From Bugula neritina (taxonomy: Eukaryota > Animalia > Bryozoa), in the NCBI GenBank assembly GCA_964035545.1, contig OZ037765.1, forward strand, positions 33,975,504 to 34,039,503: a stretch of 64,000 nucleotides of DNA, given 5' to 3'. The notes under the pieces are model-generated. The model worked only from the letters and a program-made list of their open reading frames with translations. It did no database searches and had not been told where the DNA came from. A program made the translations under genes and the position numbers. Below are positions 1 through 36,600 of this stretch, one piece after another (within the stretch, counting starts at the first letter, position 1; every line of letters begins with the position of its first letter).

Positions 1-257
1 CTGAGCACTGAATAAGTTGAAAGGCTATAGTTAGTGTTTTAATATATAACTTTGAATAGTTGTGACGCTAGAGCAATGATAGACCATGATCCTCAAATCT
101 AGTGTTAACTGTACAAAACCTTTGCTATGTATACAGACAGTTGCTGAGTTACTGATGAAATATTATATACAAATATAAATCTAGTGTTAACTGTAGAAAC
201 CTTTGCTATGTATACAGACAGTTGCTGAGTTACTGATGAGATATTATATTTATTACA

Positions 258-615
258 TAGTATGAATAGTCACTAAATACTAGCTAGGAGTATGAATAGT
301 CACTAAATACTAGTTAGCAGTATGAATAGTCACTAAATACTAGCTAACAGTATGAATAGTCACTAAATACTAGCTAGCAGTATGAATAGTCACTAAATAT
401 TAGCTAGCAGTATGAATAGTCACTAAATACTAGCTAGCAGTATGAATAGTCACTAAATACTAGCTAGCAGTATGAATAGTCACTAAATACTAACTAACAG
501 TATGAATAGTCACTAAATACTAGTTAGCAGTATGAATAGTCACTAAATATTAGCCAGCAGTATGAATAGTCACTAAATACTAGCTAGCAGTATGAATAGT
601 CACTAAATACTAGCT
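258..615. repeat. 30-bp satellite (TAGCTAGCAGTATGAATAGTCACTAAATAC)n, ~12 units, in a gene B intron
   Basis: Tandem units read directly. Confidence 0.97.
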
Positions 616-30600: not shown

Positions 30601-33600
30601 AGTTCTTGCAGACTACTCAGTGTGTACACAGGAGATGGTAAATTGGTGAAGTTATTATCTGATATGTACAGTCTCTCTAACTTCTGTAGACTCCGCATGC
30701 TGTTAAACAACATACATAATAGGAGATATAATAAGGAATATGACACATATAACATACACACTGTAGAAGAGAATGCACACAGGTAATCAATTGATATAAT
30801 ATTGTAAATGTTTTTCATATTAGACATCAGCTTTTCTTACAAATACTTCAGTGCATTGAAGTACTTCAAGTTAATTGATAGACTGTCATGTCAAGGTGGA
30901 CATTTAAACAGTTTTCTATATTATCTAGAAGATTTTCATCTCATGGAGGAAAGACTATTGAGGACAGCCTAGTTGGAAACCTCAGAAATCTTTACTAGGT
31001 TCCATAAAATTATTTTTGAACAGAGCTTATAGCAGCTAGTATAATTTTATATCAATTTCTGCAGATCTAGACTTCATGCAGTAATTAGCTCACTTTCCTT
31101 GTTGAGGGATAATTCTTAATAGGGTGTACTTGCTAATAGGTCCTTCATATTAATAGATAACAGAAGCTTTAAAGTGATGATGTAACTAAGGGTAGTGTGT
31201 GTGTGACCTTTGCATAAACTGTTCTGGTAAATATCACAAATAATAGAGAGTTGAGTAATTATTTAAAAAGATGGCAAGATATTAACTATCAGTATATCTA
31301 TTCATCTACAGAACTTGATAAAATAAATAGTACATTGTTATCTGGTGAAAGTTATATGACTTTACTGTATCCTCTGTGAACATAATATAATATTCACATC
31401 TTAGCAATCACTGCCTTTTATCTTAACTGTACATACTGTAGATAGTCAATGTATAGCTATGCTAGCCTGCAGCTGGGCACCATATAATACTCAACCACCC
31501 AAATAATAGCAGCACGTGGTACAAGTAGAACAACTCAGCCAATCAACACTCAGCAACAATCTGTAAAGTTGAGTCACCACTCAATTCAAAGTTACAAATT
31601 CTACTGATAGCTGGTCTAAGATCAGATAGCTGTGAGATAATACATTTATATCCTTAGAGTAAACAGGTACTAGTACTGTACACACAGTAAGCTACAAACT
31701 CTGTAGCTGTCAACCAATAGAAATATCATCTCCTTAACCAATCACAATGCAAGTCACTTTCGTAATCAACCACAACTAAGTGTAGGGCCACACTACGAGA
31801 ATACGCTAGTGACCTGCCACACACATTGCAAAAATGTATTAGCCAGTGTTAGCGTTAAATTTACTGCTCGCTACAGGCGTTTGTTTTCAAACCTACGTCA
31901 TCGGCAAAGTGATTTGGATATTATAAAAGCGGGAATGCAAACTATATAAAACTGTTTTAAAAGTTAAATCGTAAATCAAAATAAAAAAGTGAAAATCCCA
32001 AATTCTGGGCTAAACCCGTGGCCCTATTATAATTAAATCTCACTCTGCACTAAATACTAGTTAGCAGTATGAATAGGTGGGAGTACTCTGTGTAGTGTAT
32101 ATTCCCCTCACTTGTTTACCATGATGAGCTATTATACATACTACAGTATTATTCTACACTATAATATAATACACACCTGTTTGGTAGAGTTGACAGTTTA
32201 CAGTTCCACATGTACAACTCTCTCAATGATAGTAAGGATGTGAATATATTGTCAGGTAGACCTTCAGATAGGTTATTCTCTGGTATATTCAATACCTCAA
32301 GATTCTTCAGTGAAGATATGCTGTAACATAACATACAGGGATAAATACATTCTGTGAAGTTATAGAGTACAACTTACACGAGGATTAGTGTGATATGATT
32401 GTGTGCCAGTGTGGCTAGAGGAAAGAGAAGACAACACTATTGACAACAGTGAAGACTATTTATATATTATTACTCTATTTTACTTCAATACTTTATGCCA
32501 GCTAAACATGGGATAATGATAGACTGAGTGAGCACTGATTAAATTAAATGGTCAGTTGGAAGTGATAAGTGAAAGTGTTGAATAAGTTGAAACTTCAACA
32601 GAATATCCCCAACTTGAGTGTTAACTGTAGAAACCTTTGCTATGTATGCAGACAGTTGCTGAGTTACTGATGAGATATTATATTTATTACAATATCATTC
32701 TACACTATAATATAATACACACCTGTTTGGTAGAGTTGACAGTTCACAGTACTCCATGTACAACTCTCTCAATGATAGTAAGGATGTGAATATATTGTCA
32801 AGTAGATCTTCAGATAGGTTATTCCATGATATATTCAATACCTCAAGATTCTTCAGTGAATATATGCTGTAACATAATATTATACAGGTATAGAAACACT
32901 CTGTAGCTCATACATACAAAGTGTGATAACAGAGTTTTAGAATATTATTATGACTCTGTATTTCTACCATCTAACCTCTAGACAACCTTGGGCATAGCAG
33001 TTGTATAATGAGTAACTATGAGGGGATAACTACTATAATGAAGAAGTAGAAAGCTCACTTTATTTATAACCTAGGAACTAGTAAATCATAGACTGAGAAT
33101 AAACGTATTCAGGTAGCAGTGACTGAAAGAGTAATTAGTAAAAGTTTGAATGAGTTTTGTTACAGTTTGGTTTGAGCTGCAGAGTTCCTATGGCAGAGGT
33201 GGGCAACTGGGCCTACCAAGGGCCACTTGTGGACCTTTACCCATTTTTCAGTAGCCCTTTTATTGCTTAAGATAAGTAAAAACTGTCATTTTTTTCTGAT
33301 TAGCAATGCATAGGTTTGGTGACAAATTACTTTATTATAATAAAGTTTATTATGTGTACAAACATGGGGCCCTTCGCTTTTGCTGACCTCTGAACTTGGC
33401 CCTTGAGCAAAAGGAGTTGCCCACCCCTGCCCTATGGCATGACAGTAGTATGAGAGACAGTGTTGGTTAGATTAGAGAAAAGATAACTCTAATAAACAAA
33501 GAAAGTAGTTTACTATATTATATCCTAAATACTAGCAAACTGTAGCCTGGGCACTGAATAAGTTGAAAGGCTTTTAGCTCGTGCTTTATTATAATTTTGA

Positions 33601-36600
33601 ATAGTCTAGACTCTAGAGTAATAGCAGACAATGATCTTCAAGCTGAGTGTAGAAATGTAGCGAGTACATTAGAATACAACAACTACTTATTGGTAAAACT
33701 CTGAATAAGTTCAAGTCTCAACAGACCATCTTCACTTGAGTGTTAACTGTAGAAACCTTTGCTATGTATGCAGACAGTTGCTGAGTTACTGATGAGATAT
33801 TATATATATTACAGTATCATTCTACACTATAATATATTACACACCTGTTTGGTAGAGTTGGCAGTTTACAGTTCTCCATGTCCAACTCTCTCAATGATAG
33901 TAAGGATGTGAATATATTGTCAGGTAGACCTTCAAATAGGTTATTCTGTGACATATTCAATACCTCAAGATTCTCCAGTGAAGATATGCTGTAACATAAC
34001 ATACAGATATAGAAACACTCTGTAGCTCATACATACAAAGTGTGATAACAGAGTTTTAGAATATTATTATGACTCTGTATTTCTACCATCTAACCTCTAG
34101 ACAACCTTGGACATAGCAGTTGTATAATGAGTAACTATGAGGGGATAACTACTATGATGAAGAAGTAGAAAGCTCACTTTATATATAACCTAGGAACTAG
34201 TAAATCATAGACTGAGAATAAACGTAGTCAGGTAGCAGTGACTGAAAGAGTAATTAGTAAAAGTTTGAATGAGTTTTGTTACAGTTTGGTTTGAGCTGCA
34301 GAGTTCCTATGGCAGGAGCGGGCAACTGGGCCTACCAAGGCCCACTTGTGGCCCTTTGCCCATTTTTCAGTGGCCCTTTTAATGCTTAAGATAATTAAAA
34401 ACTGTCATTTTTTTGGATTAGCACAGCATAGGTTTGGTGACAAATTACTTTATTAGCCTATAATAAAGTTTATTATGTGTACAATCATGTGGCCCTTCAC
34501 TTTGGCTGACCTCTGAACTTGGCTCTTGAGCGAAAAGAGTTAGTGTTTTATTATAACTTTGAATAGTCTTGACTCTAGAGTCTAGAGCAATGATAGACCA
34601 TGATCCTCAAATCTATTGTTAACTGTAGAAACCTTTGCTCTGTATGCAGACAGTTGCTGAGTTACTGATGAGATATTATATTTATTACATAGTATGAATA
34701 GTCACTAAATACTAGCTAGCAGTATGAATAGTTACTAAATACTAGCTAGCAGTATGAATAGTTACTAAATACTAGCTAGCAGTATGAATAGTCACTAAAT
34801 ACTAGCTAACAGTATGAATAGTCACTAAATACTAGCTAGCAGTATGAATAGTCACTAAATACTAGCTAGCAGTATGAATAGTCACTAAATACTAGCTAGC
34901 AGTATGAATAGTCACTAAATACTAGCTAGCAGTATGAATAGTCACTAAATACTAGCTAGCAGTATGAATAGTCACTAAATACTAGCTAGCAGTATGAATA
35001 GTCACTAAATACTAGCTAGCAGTATGAATAGTCACTAAATACTAGCTAGCAGTATGAATAGTCACTAAATACTAGCTAGCAGTATGAATAGTCACTAAAT
35101 ACTAGCTAGCAGTATGAATAGTCACTAAATACTAGCTAGCAGTATGAATAGTCACTAAATACTAGCTAGCAGTATGAATAGCCACTAAATACTAGCTAAC
35201 AGTATGAATAGTCACTAAATACTAGCTAGCAGTATGAATAGTCACTAAATACTAGCTAGCAGTATGAATAGTCACTAAATACTAGCTAGCAGTATGAATA
35301 GTTACTAAATACTAGCTAGCAGTATGAATAGACACTAAATACTAGCTAGCAGTATGAATAGTCACTAAATACTAGCTAGCAGTATGAATAGTCACTAAAT
35401 ACTAGCTAGTAGTATGAATAGTCACTAAATACTAGCTAGCAGTATGAATAGTCACTAAATACTAGCTAGTAGTATGAATAGTCACTAAATACTAGTTAGC
35501 AGTATGAATAGTCACTAAATACTAGCTAGTAGTATGAATAGTCACTAAATACTAGCTAGCAGTATGAATAGTCACTAAATACTAGCTAACAGTATGACTA
35601 GTCACTAAATACTAGCTAGCAGTATGAATAGTCACTAAATACTAGCTAGCAGTATGAATAGTCACTAAATACTAGCTAGTAGTATGAATAGTCACTAAAT
35701 ACTAGCTAGCAGTATGAATAGTCACTAAATACTAGCTAGCAGTATGACTAGTCACTAAATACTAGCTAACAGTATGAATAGTCACTAAATACTAGCTAGC
35801 AGTATGAATAGTTACTAAATACTAGCTAGTAGTATGAATAGTCACTAAATACTAGTTAGCAGTATGAATAGTCACTAAATACTAGTTAGCAGTATGAATA
35901 GTCACTAAATACTAGCTAACAGTATGACTAGTCACTAAATACTAGCTAGCAGTATGAATAGTCGCTAAATACTAGCTAGCAGTATGAATAGTCCCTAAAT
36001 GGTCCTGTGATACTCAATAATATGACTACAATGTAATACTACCATAACAATATAGTACCTGGTCCAGTTAGCATTACTGTCTACTCCAGATACATTCAGA
36101 TGTGTGAGATGAGGAAACACTGTGTTGATATTTGGAGGAATGTCATGCTTCAGTATAACATGAGTAACTGTATGATGTCTACTTTTATCATCGATAGTGT
36201 ACAGTGTAGTAGCTTTCGACACCCAATCATGATCAGCTCCATCTATACTGGATGTGTTGAACCACACCTCATACTCCTCTACAAAATATGCACCACTTTA
36301 TAAATAATAACTTTGATATCAAATAACAGAGTGTCTCAACACTATAAACAGTATTTAATTAAATGTGGAGAGTTCACAACTCCAAACAACATATTAACTT
36401 CAGTTGTTATATCAAAGGAGCAGACTGATAATATAGTATATATGACTCAGTATAGTCTTCAAACACCTTCTAATATTCTCTATAATATATAATAGTGACT
36501 GGAAGTCACTTGTATCTCTAGACTCAGCACCAGCAAAGTATGTACAGAACACCTTGATTCTAGTATCTGTAATACTAGTGATACACTCTTCTATAGAAGT

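Follow-up and report, generated by a model that had tools for sequence, protein, structure and literature searches.

In the bryozoan Bugula neritina, a 64,000-bp stretch of chromosome 1 (C1; contig OZ037765.1, positions 33,975,504 to 34,039,503), referred to here as the window, contains two genes of the leucine-rich repeat (LRR)-Roc-COR-caspase type, gene A and gene B, whose introns carry arrays of a 30-bp minisatellite. The original prediction, which was made from the sequence alone, proposed that this satellite is a recombination junction, and perhaps a site at which blocks of LRR cassettes are swapped.

Genes and repeat arrays at the locus

Both genes are on the minus strand, as judged from their open reading frames (ORFs) and from Pfam matches. 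On this strand the ORFs follow one order: a Pro/Ser/Thr-rich exon 1, exon 2, many LRR exons, a large exon with LRRs, Roc and a weak COR-A, and finally the caspase exons. In gene B, consecutive ORFs match LRR_4/LRR_8, Roc, COR-A (weakly) and Peptidase_C14, so that all four domain types are found in a single predicted minus-strand gene, which is assigned to the Roco-caspase family. In general, the genes look complete, with ordinary splice sites, and each cassette appears to be a 144-bp exon that is flanked by AG and GT.

Exon 2 and the 144-bp double-LRR cassettes that border the repeat-bearing introns are all in phase 2. Consequently, any exon 2 or cassette can be joined in frame to any cassette, and exchanges at the arrays would preserve the reading frame. 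Between the repeat sites there are three cassettes in gene B, and six plus three in gene A. The youngest cassette duplications of gene A are 2.35-kb units that are 96% identical to each other and lack the 30-bp repeat. An intron minisatellite with a 15-bp unit, present in 2-7 copies, is found at window 3044-3148, 5407-5451, 6676-6735 and 39909-39937; its location is constant from one 2.35-kb cassette unit to the next, and it is a second private repeat that was copied together with its intron.

The window was scanned for tandem repeats with Tandem Repeats Finder (TRF) and, in addition, with a k-mer scan. TRF reported three arrays of the 30-bp unit, with between 12.4 and 43.7 copies (Table 1), and the k-mer scan located a lone 29-bp unit at window 32048-32076. 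These arrays fill the core of short introns near exon edges, close to the chromosome end. The unit contains CTAGCTAGC and, within it, the motifs AGCT, TAGCTA and GCTAGC; the AGCT and TAGCTA palindromes that had been noted in each unit are therefore present. Its composition is 12 A, 8 T, 5 G and 5 C (33% G+C), with zero G/C skew and one AGCT per 30 bp. When four units were folded and compared with shuffled sequences, no excess was observed (z -0.9), and a special hairpin or cruciform propensity of the palindromic unit was likewise discarded, as it does not rise above that of the shuffles. A further idea, that the unit was seeded from a donor-proximal intron segment to which 17 of its 30 bases can be matched by eye, was also abandoned, since local alignment does no better with the unit than with shuffled units.

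Distribution of the repeat, its flanks and their pairings

When the assembly of 216,009,554 bases was searched, strong matches to the repeat were found only on C1, with 14 arrays at 33.83-34.01 Mb, on the plus strand, and four at 34.83-34.97 Mb, on the minus strand. There are thus about 18 arrays within 1.15 Mb, and the rest of the genome gives only 68-74% matches. Two of the distal arrays, at C1:34,883,058 and 34,932,504, have been characterised only in part or not at all. Two of the array edges described below, P46 and Y, are likewise restricted to the C1 cluster. Since both the repeat and its edges are confined in this way, the satellite is private to a local gene subfamily and is not a dispersed element. 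In effect, some 18 introns carry the repeat because the host introns were duplicated, and it is this shared origin that makes the flank pairings informative. Array size across the cluster spans 1 to 90 units and includes contracted derivatives of one array pattern. In metagenomes, scans with the unit and with the X junction described below returned no matches.

A conserved module in several introns might also be expected if the repeat were the internal satellite of a transposable element that was inserted independently in each of them. In this case, the conserved edges Yend and P46 could be the ends of the element, and transposable elements are common in the region, with one terminal inverted repeat (TIR) element inserted in an array. 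Nevertheless, such an origin is scarcely conceivable: the repeat and its edges are absent outside the 1.15-Mb cluster in a 216-Mb genome, all of the approximately 18 arrays, which are tandem units at paralogous sites, have the same orientation relative to their host gene, and neither terminal inverted repeats nor target-site duplications were noticed at the module edges, although no dedicated scan was made for them. The TIR element just mentioned is about 1.17 kb long (CAGGGTTGGGG...CCCCAACCCTG) and lies at C1:33,971,129-33,972,303, just upstream of the window, where it splits its host array into blocks of 4.2 and 6.6 units.

For the analysis of the flanks, 155 kb upstream of the window were added, and short landmarks were mapped over the resulting 220 kb. 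Read on the plus strand, one order of landmarks recurs throughout this region: Xcore (75 bp), Xend (21 bp), 32 bp, an exon, 20 bp, Ycore (94 bp), Yend (~29-50 bp), the array, P46 (46 bp), Xend, 32 bp, and an exon. In gene sense, the intron that follows exon 2 begins with Q (58-79 nt), the one that follows a 144-bp cassette exon begins with P (~100 nt), and Y is the acceptor-proximal end of the intron ahead of the next cassette. X is not a flank private to the satellite but the donor-proximal start of the cassette intron, and it is found beside many cassette exons, with or without the 30-bp repeat. It adjoins the repeat only at window 258 and 34690, where Yend, Ycore, one exon and 32 nt are absent. 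At the first of these sites, an 81-bp stretch of X is duplicated in tandem (window 95-249), and the duplication ends at most 10 bp from the start of the gene A array; in gene B, this stretch is present as a single copy.

The presence of the satellite at four sites, with the flanks and pairings that had been listed for them, was borne out by TRF, by reading of the sequence and by self-BLAST. Some details of the flanks have to be amended, however. It had been cautioned that the homology between the two Y flanks is short because a miniature inverted-repeat transposable element (MITE) abuts Y in gene A, but the situation is the reverse. The Y flank of gene A is typical of the family, as at least six other arrays have ~120 bp of it next to them, with 87-94% conservation, and it is Y in gene B that is truncated by a MITE-like element. 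Copies related to this element are found in the same intron of paralogues. Similarly, the two Q junctions do share Q sequence, but they are different junctions, with 24 extra bases in gene A and none in gene B. The P2 flank of gene A, together with the degenerate last repeat unit next to it, is held in common only with the array at C1:33,832,127-898. Beyond Ycore at the intron-2 array of gene A (window 7226-7406), there is no cassette exon, and ~290 bp, which correspond to the exon and the donor side, are absent; this gap points to another exon-sized deletion, in this case one that does not end in the array.

Table 1. Features of genes A and B in the window, ordered by position
Feature	Position in window	Strand	Remarks
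X flank, gene A	29-258	+	81-bp tandem duplication; X-repeat junction at 258/259
Minisatellite array, 12.4 units	259-629	+	Pairing X-P2; gene A internal intron
P2 flank, gene A	630-745	+	P46-like segment, then start of the intron after the cassette exon
LRR cassette exon, gene A	746-889	-	144 bp, two 24-residue repeats; phase-2 introns on both sides; GT and AG read from the sequence
Y flank, gene A	7407-7529	+	Ycore 94 bp and Yend 29 bp; family-typical left edge of the repeat module
Minisatellite array, 30.8 units	7530-8455	+	Pairing Y-Q24; gene A intron 2
Q flank, gene A	8456-8534	+	Start of intron 2 (79 nt); the 24 bases that gene B lacks (8456-8479), then the shared part
Exon 2, gene A	8535-8752	-	Exact boundary is the donor, 8535/8534, only; donor-side phase 2
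First coding ORF, gene A	9393-9692	-	Pro/Ser/Thr-rich N-terminus; marks the 5′ end of the gene; from the ORF listing
Downstream exons, gene B	27065-30827	-	LRR, Roc and COR at 28650-30827; caspase at 27065-27301 and 27420-27653
MITE-like element	31783-32027 (approximate)		Short terminal inverted repeats; cuts Y of gene B to ~20-21 bp
Yend remnant (~20-21 bp) and single 29-bp unit	32028-32076	+	Pairing Y-P46; gene B, last repeat-bearing intron ahead of the LRR-Roc-COR exon
P flank, gene B	32077-32176	+	46-bp P46 and start of the intron after the cassette exon
Cassette exon, gene B	~32177-32320		Adjoins the P flank
X flank, gene B	34538-34690	+	Ends in the same X-repeat junction as in gene A
Minisatellite array, 43.7 units	34691-36000	+	Pairing X-Q; gene B intron 2
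Q flank, gene B	36001-36058	+	Shared Q immediately next to the repeat; the 24 bases of gene A missing
Exon 2, gene B	36059-36267	-	

Across the cluster, the usual pairings are Y-P and Y-Q. About eight arrays are of the Y-P46 type (one of them split by the 1.2-kb TIR element), and three, in intron 2 of gene A and of two paralogues (G1 and G2), are of the Y-Q24 type. The remaining pairings are found once each: Y-P2 at C1:33,832,127 (in G0), X-P2 in gene A, and X-Q in gene B. Counted by junction over the whole genome, there are 2 X-repeat, 2 repeat-P2, 8 Yend-repeat, 11 repeat-P46 and 3 repeat-Q24 junctions. P46 was probably the ancestral right edge everywhere, because it is still kept between the array and Q in intron 2 of two divergent genes (G3 at 33,936,386, and the one with distal array D2). 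There are three other right edges: Q24, the direct Q seen in gene B, and another type in array D1. They look like deletions that all end at the array but differ in how far they extend. The left edges suggest another three deletions, represented by X, by a D1 type that lies 22 nt nearer the exon, and by a D2 type that reaches 27 nt into it.

In maps of unit variants, only the arrays of G1 and G2 share clear sub-patterns, those of G1 being two contracted versions of an array like that of G2. A single 41-unit array of G2 holds, in order, both of the shorter array patterns of G1 (arrays at C1:33,857,003, 33,857,904 and 33,890,825). This arrangement fits the duplication in G1 of one module, composed of array, P46, exon and Y, followed by contraction.

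A probable exchange at the arrays and the alternatives to it

The self-BLAST of the window shows that the flanks are genuine homologues, with similarity far above chance: positions 29-629 align with 34538-35151, 601-908 with 32048-32339 (E 1.6e-91), and 7530-9335 with 35063-36839. All three blocks of homology between genes A and B that touch an array change partner exactly there. The junctions themselves are also informative. Both X-repeat junctions are identical to the base, including two bases that would not be expected from a simple join at the microhomology CAGTAT, and both have a T in Xend, at a position where 9 of the 11 aligned copies have an A. The two repeat-P2 junctions, for their part, have the same degenerate last unit and the same distinctive flank. 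Each of these junctions looks identical by descent. When the pairings were tabulated across paralogues, as had been suggested, a four-gamete conflict was found: although the X-repeat and repeat-P2 junctions are present only twice each, X-P2, X-Q, Y-P2 and Y with another right edge are all represented. If each junction had a single origin, all four combinations can be present only if one or more exchanges took place between the two edges of an array. The simplest history, judging from these sequences, is therefore one with at least one past exchange, either a crossover or a conversion, whose breakpoint was inside an array. This retains part of the claim that the reciprocal pairings were produced by crossovers in the satellite, as the junction tallies speak for at least one exchange; however, Y-P and Y-Q are ancestral intron types, and only the pairings of X need an exchange.

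The same pairings could arise with no exchange in the repeat if one exon-removing deletion had taken place beside the array twice independently, in the internal intron of gene A and in intron 2 of gene B, with descent accounting for the rest. It is true that edge deletions recur, as there are at least three right edges and three left edges other than Y, and that CAGTAT is shared between the repeat and the normal sequence at the relevant point, which could favour recurrence. Still, two independent deletions seem improbable, given that the junctions agree even in the two bases that a CAGTAT join does not leave, that both carry the rare T of Xend, and that P2, an independent marker, shows the same four-gamete conflict.

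Overall, we consider it likely that the minisatellite was copied, within its introns, along with genes and cassettes during the expansion of a local subfamily of LRR-Roc-COR-caspase genes (C1 33.83-34.97 Mb), and that the arrays served passively, in the germline, as substrates for unequal recombination, slippage and deletions at their edges. We infer both the order of the events and that these were germline events and not programmed ones. The ancestral module would have been Yend-array-P46, in introns between phase-2 exons, and the starting state for the X pairings would have been a Y-array-P2 intron such as that of G0. The X junction would then have formed once, by the loss beside the array of ~290-330 bp that comprised one cassette exon together with Ycore, Yend and the initial 32 nt of the following intron, with X-array-P2 as the result, as in gene A. 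Subsequently, the intron-2 array of an A-like gene may have paired unequally with the internal array, with the cassette block between them being dropped and X-array-Q being produced, as in gene B. A block of this kind would match the three cassettes of gene B compared with the six plus three of gene A. The transfer of the X junction from one context to the other would need one homologous exchange inside the array, which may have been an unequal crossover or a gene conversion. More generally, unequal recombination, slippage and edge deletions at the arrays could change the number of LRR cassettes in frame.

Several observations limit this history or weigh against it. The first concerns the location of homology breakpoints, which were examined by collapsing every array to ~60-90 bp and repeating the self-comparison, with endpoints within 40 bp being taken as at an array. 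Of 215 clusters of homology endpoints, which are not independent of each other, 26 are at arrays, compared with 10.5 expected (2.5-fold; binomial p = 2e-5). The enrichment of breakpoints in the satellite that had been sought is thus present and speaks for the history, but it is modest and partly reflects the fact that the repeat module is an alternative intron core, and 88% of the breakpoints lie away from arrays, with only 12% at them. The unit-variant maps of the four arrays in the window have no clear common sub-blocks that would mark a crossover point. When the nearest paralogues were painted around the internal array of gene A, a fine mosaic was obtained, with 88-95% identity to several genes, and no long tract was found that would point to a donor or back a chimeric origin; the similar identity to several paralogues suggests that concerted evolution has blurred the history. 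In addition, the three-cassette blocks of the two genes have neither the same intron types nor the same spacing, which means that gene B was not derived from the present-day gene A. Finally, none of the arrays is bridged by the reads that were examined, which are short unitigs. Separately, the possibility that gene A is a simple chimera whose 3′ part is nearest to gene B was considered and discarded, as this part resembles G1 and G2 at least as closely.

The want of bridging reads bears on the assembly as well, since near-identical arrays in paralogues are well known to cause mis-joins, and one or more of the pairings could be a false join between paralogues within an array. The public runs at window 31500-34790 consist of 120-560-nt unitigs from other individuals, with heavy cross-mapping of paralogues, and are too short to bridge an array; the joints observed in public contigs (one of them at 31666-32029) can be attributed to paralogues that have the other P subtype or lack the MITE. 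The assembly in question, tzBugNeri2.1, was built from PacBio HiFi reads at ~132-fold coverage (PMC11480708). Mis-joins are unlikely in view of this published HiFi origin (PMC11480708) and of the shortness of the arrays, which, at 0.03-1.3 kb, are far shorter than HiFi reads. Moreover, the one-unit Y-P site offers no array to mis-join, and every array is flanked on either side by sequence that is consistent with a coherent gene structure. Altogether, an artefactual pairing is very unlikely.

A different role for the arrays was raised by the original prediction itself, in which they serve as a swap site for LRR cassette blocks and resemble immunoglobulin (Ig) switch regions. In its strongest form, this would be a programmed, possibly somatic recombination site, comparable to Ig switching or to the assembly of lamprey VLR genes. 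The restriction of the repeat to a fast-evolving family of putative immune or cell-death receptors would agree with such a role, as would the phase symmetry of the cassettes, owing to which swaps would be in frame, and the AGCT-containing palindromes of the unit. Nevertheless, a programmed site is barely credible. The genes are complete and have ordinary splice sites, the unit is AT-rich, unskewed and devoid of a special fold, and TRF finds dozens of other minisatellites in the window. In addition, no rearranged forms were found among the public short unitigs, in which the joints that were seen fit paralogues. The youngest cassette duplications lack the repeat, and most breakpoints lie elsewhere; the 30-bp repeat is one recombination substrate among several and not the swap site. 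We would give equally little credence to the repeat being a favoured and selected recombination site, in either soma or germline, at which in-frame LRR cassette blocks of the Roco-caspase receptor are shuffled or deleted. If that were the case, the receptors of this colonial animal could be diversified between individuals or clones.

Other repeats are found in the window. For instance, at the caspase end of gene B, a 14-bp satellite of 122 copies (window 24822-26528) is situated between ORFs, and exemplifies the very dense intron repeats of the region. An inverted repeat of 1181 bp with 99.9% identity (window 12102-13282 and 16082-17262, ~2.8 kb apart) may reflect either a recent duplication in inverted orientation or an element whose long ends are inverted repeats. 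Likewise, a direct repeat of 737 bp with 98.9% identity (window 41119-41855 and 45179-45909, ~4 kb apart) could represent the two long terminal repeats of a retroelement.

Significance and comparison with known systems

The locus offers a base-level example of how a tandem repeat that is private to an intron becomes, once copied with that intron, a substrate for the in-frame gain and loss of cassettes, and it does so in a rapidly expanding family of putative immune or cell-death receptors from a little-studied phylum. The X-repeat and repeat-P2 junctions, with two genome copies each, may be used as markers in long-read surveys of structural variation in populations. No new mechanism is involved, as repeat-mediated unequal recombination in immune gene clusters is already well known. 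What is distinctive is the placement of a 30-bp intron minisatellite between symmetric cassettes, together with an unusually clean four-gamete argument drawn from the junction sequences.

Human hypervariable minisatellites were recognised by Jeffreys and colleagues as sites of unequal exchange and conversion. The arrays of Bugula resemble them in having units of tens of bases, large differences in copy number and exchange within arrays. Nevertheless, human minisatellites are typically G+C-rich, with an instability that is driven by flanking meiotic hotspots, whereas the Bugula unit has 33% G+C.

Ig switch regions have a G-rich non-template strand, R-loops and dense WGCW motifs, and their recombination is somatic and depends on AID. 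As in these regions, the Bugula repeats are intronic and bear AGCT, and a deletion between two blocks would remove the intervening exons. No further likeness is seen: the unit is neither G-rich nor asymmetric between strands nor dense in WGCW, and the resemblance that had been proposed is not upheld by its composition or folding. In lamprey VLR genes, an incomplete germline gene is accompanied by flanking cassettes that have no splice sites and enter the gene by somatic copying. By contrast, the Bugula genes are complete, and their cassettes are exons with AG and GT sites and phase 2/2.

The closest parallels are the KIR and Sp185/333 genes. Among vertebrate receptors, the hybrid gene KIR2DL3/2DP1 was formed by non-allelic homologous recombination at an intronic Alu (PMC2816608). 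Here too, paralogous receptor genes are arranged in tandem, the breakpoint is in an intronic repeat, and the product is hybrid or shortened but in frame. The repeat involved in KIR is a dispersed short interspersed element, and its events were caught as human haplotypes; in Bugula, the minisatellite is private to the locus, and the events are inferred from paralogues alone.

Finally, in the Sp185/333 (SpTransformer) family of the purple sea urchin, microsatellites bound genes and segmental duplications (PMC3091723; PMC5103432). Both cases are clustered, fast-diversifying families of immune type in invertebrates, in which the segments that were duplicated or exchanged have tandem repeats at their edges, and these repeats are inferred to favour duplication, deletion and gene conversion. 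The Sp185/333 repeats, however, are di- and trinucleotide microsatellites in the intergenic flanks of small two-exon genes. In Bugula, a 30-bp minisatellite lies within introns, between cassettes, such that exchanges change the number of repeats inside the gene, and the evidence for them comes from junctions in a four-gamete configuration.

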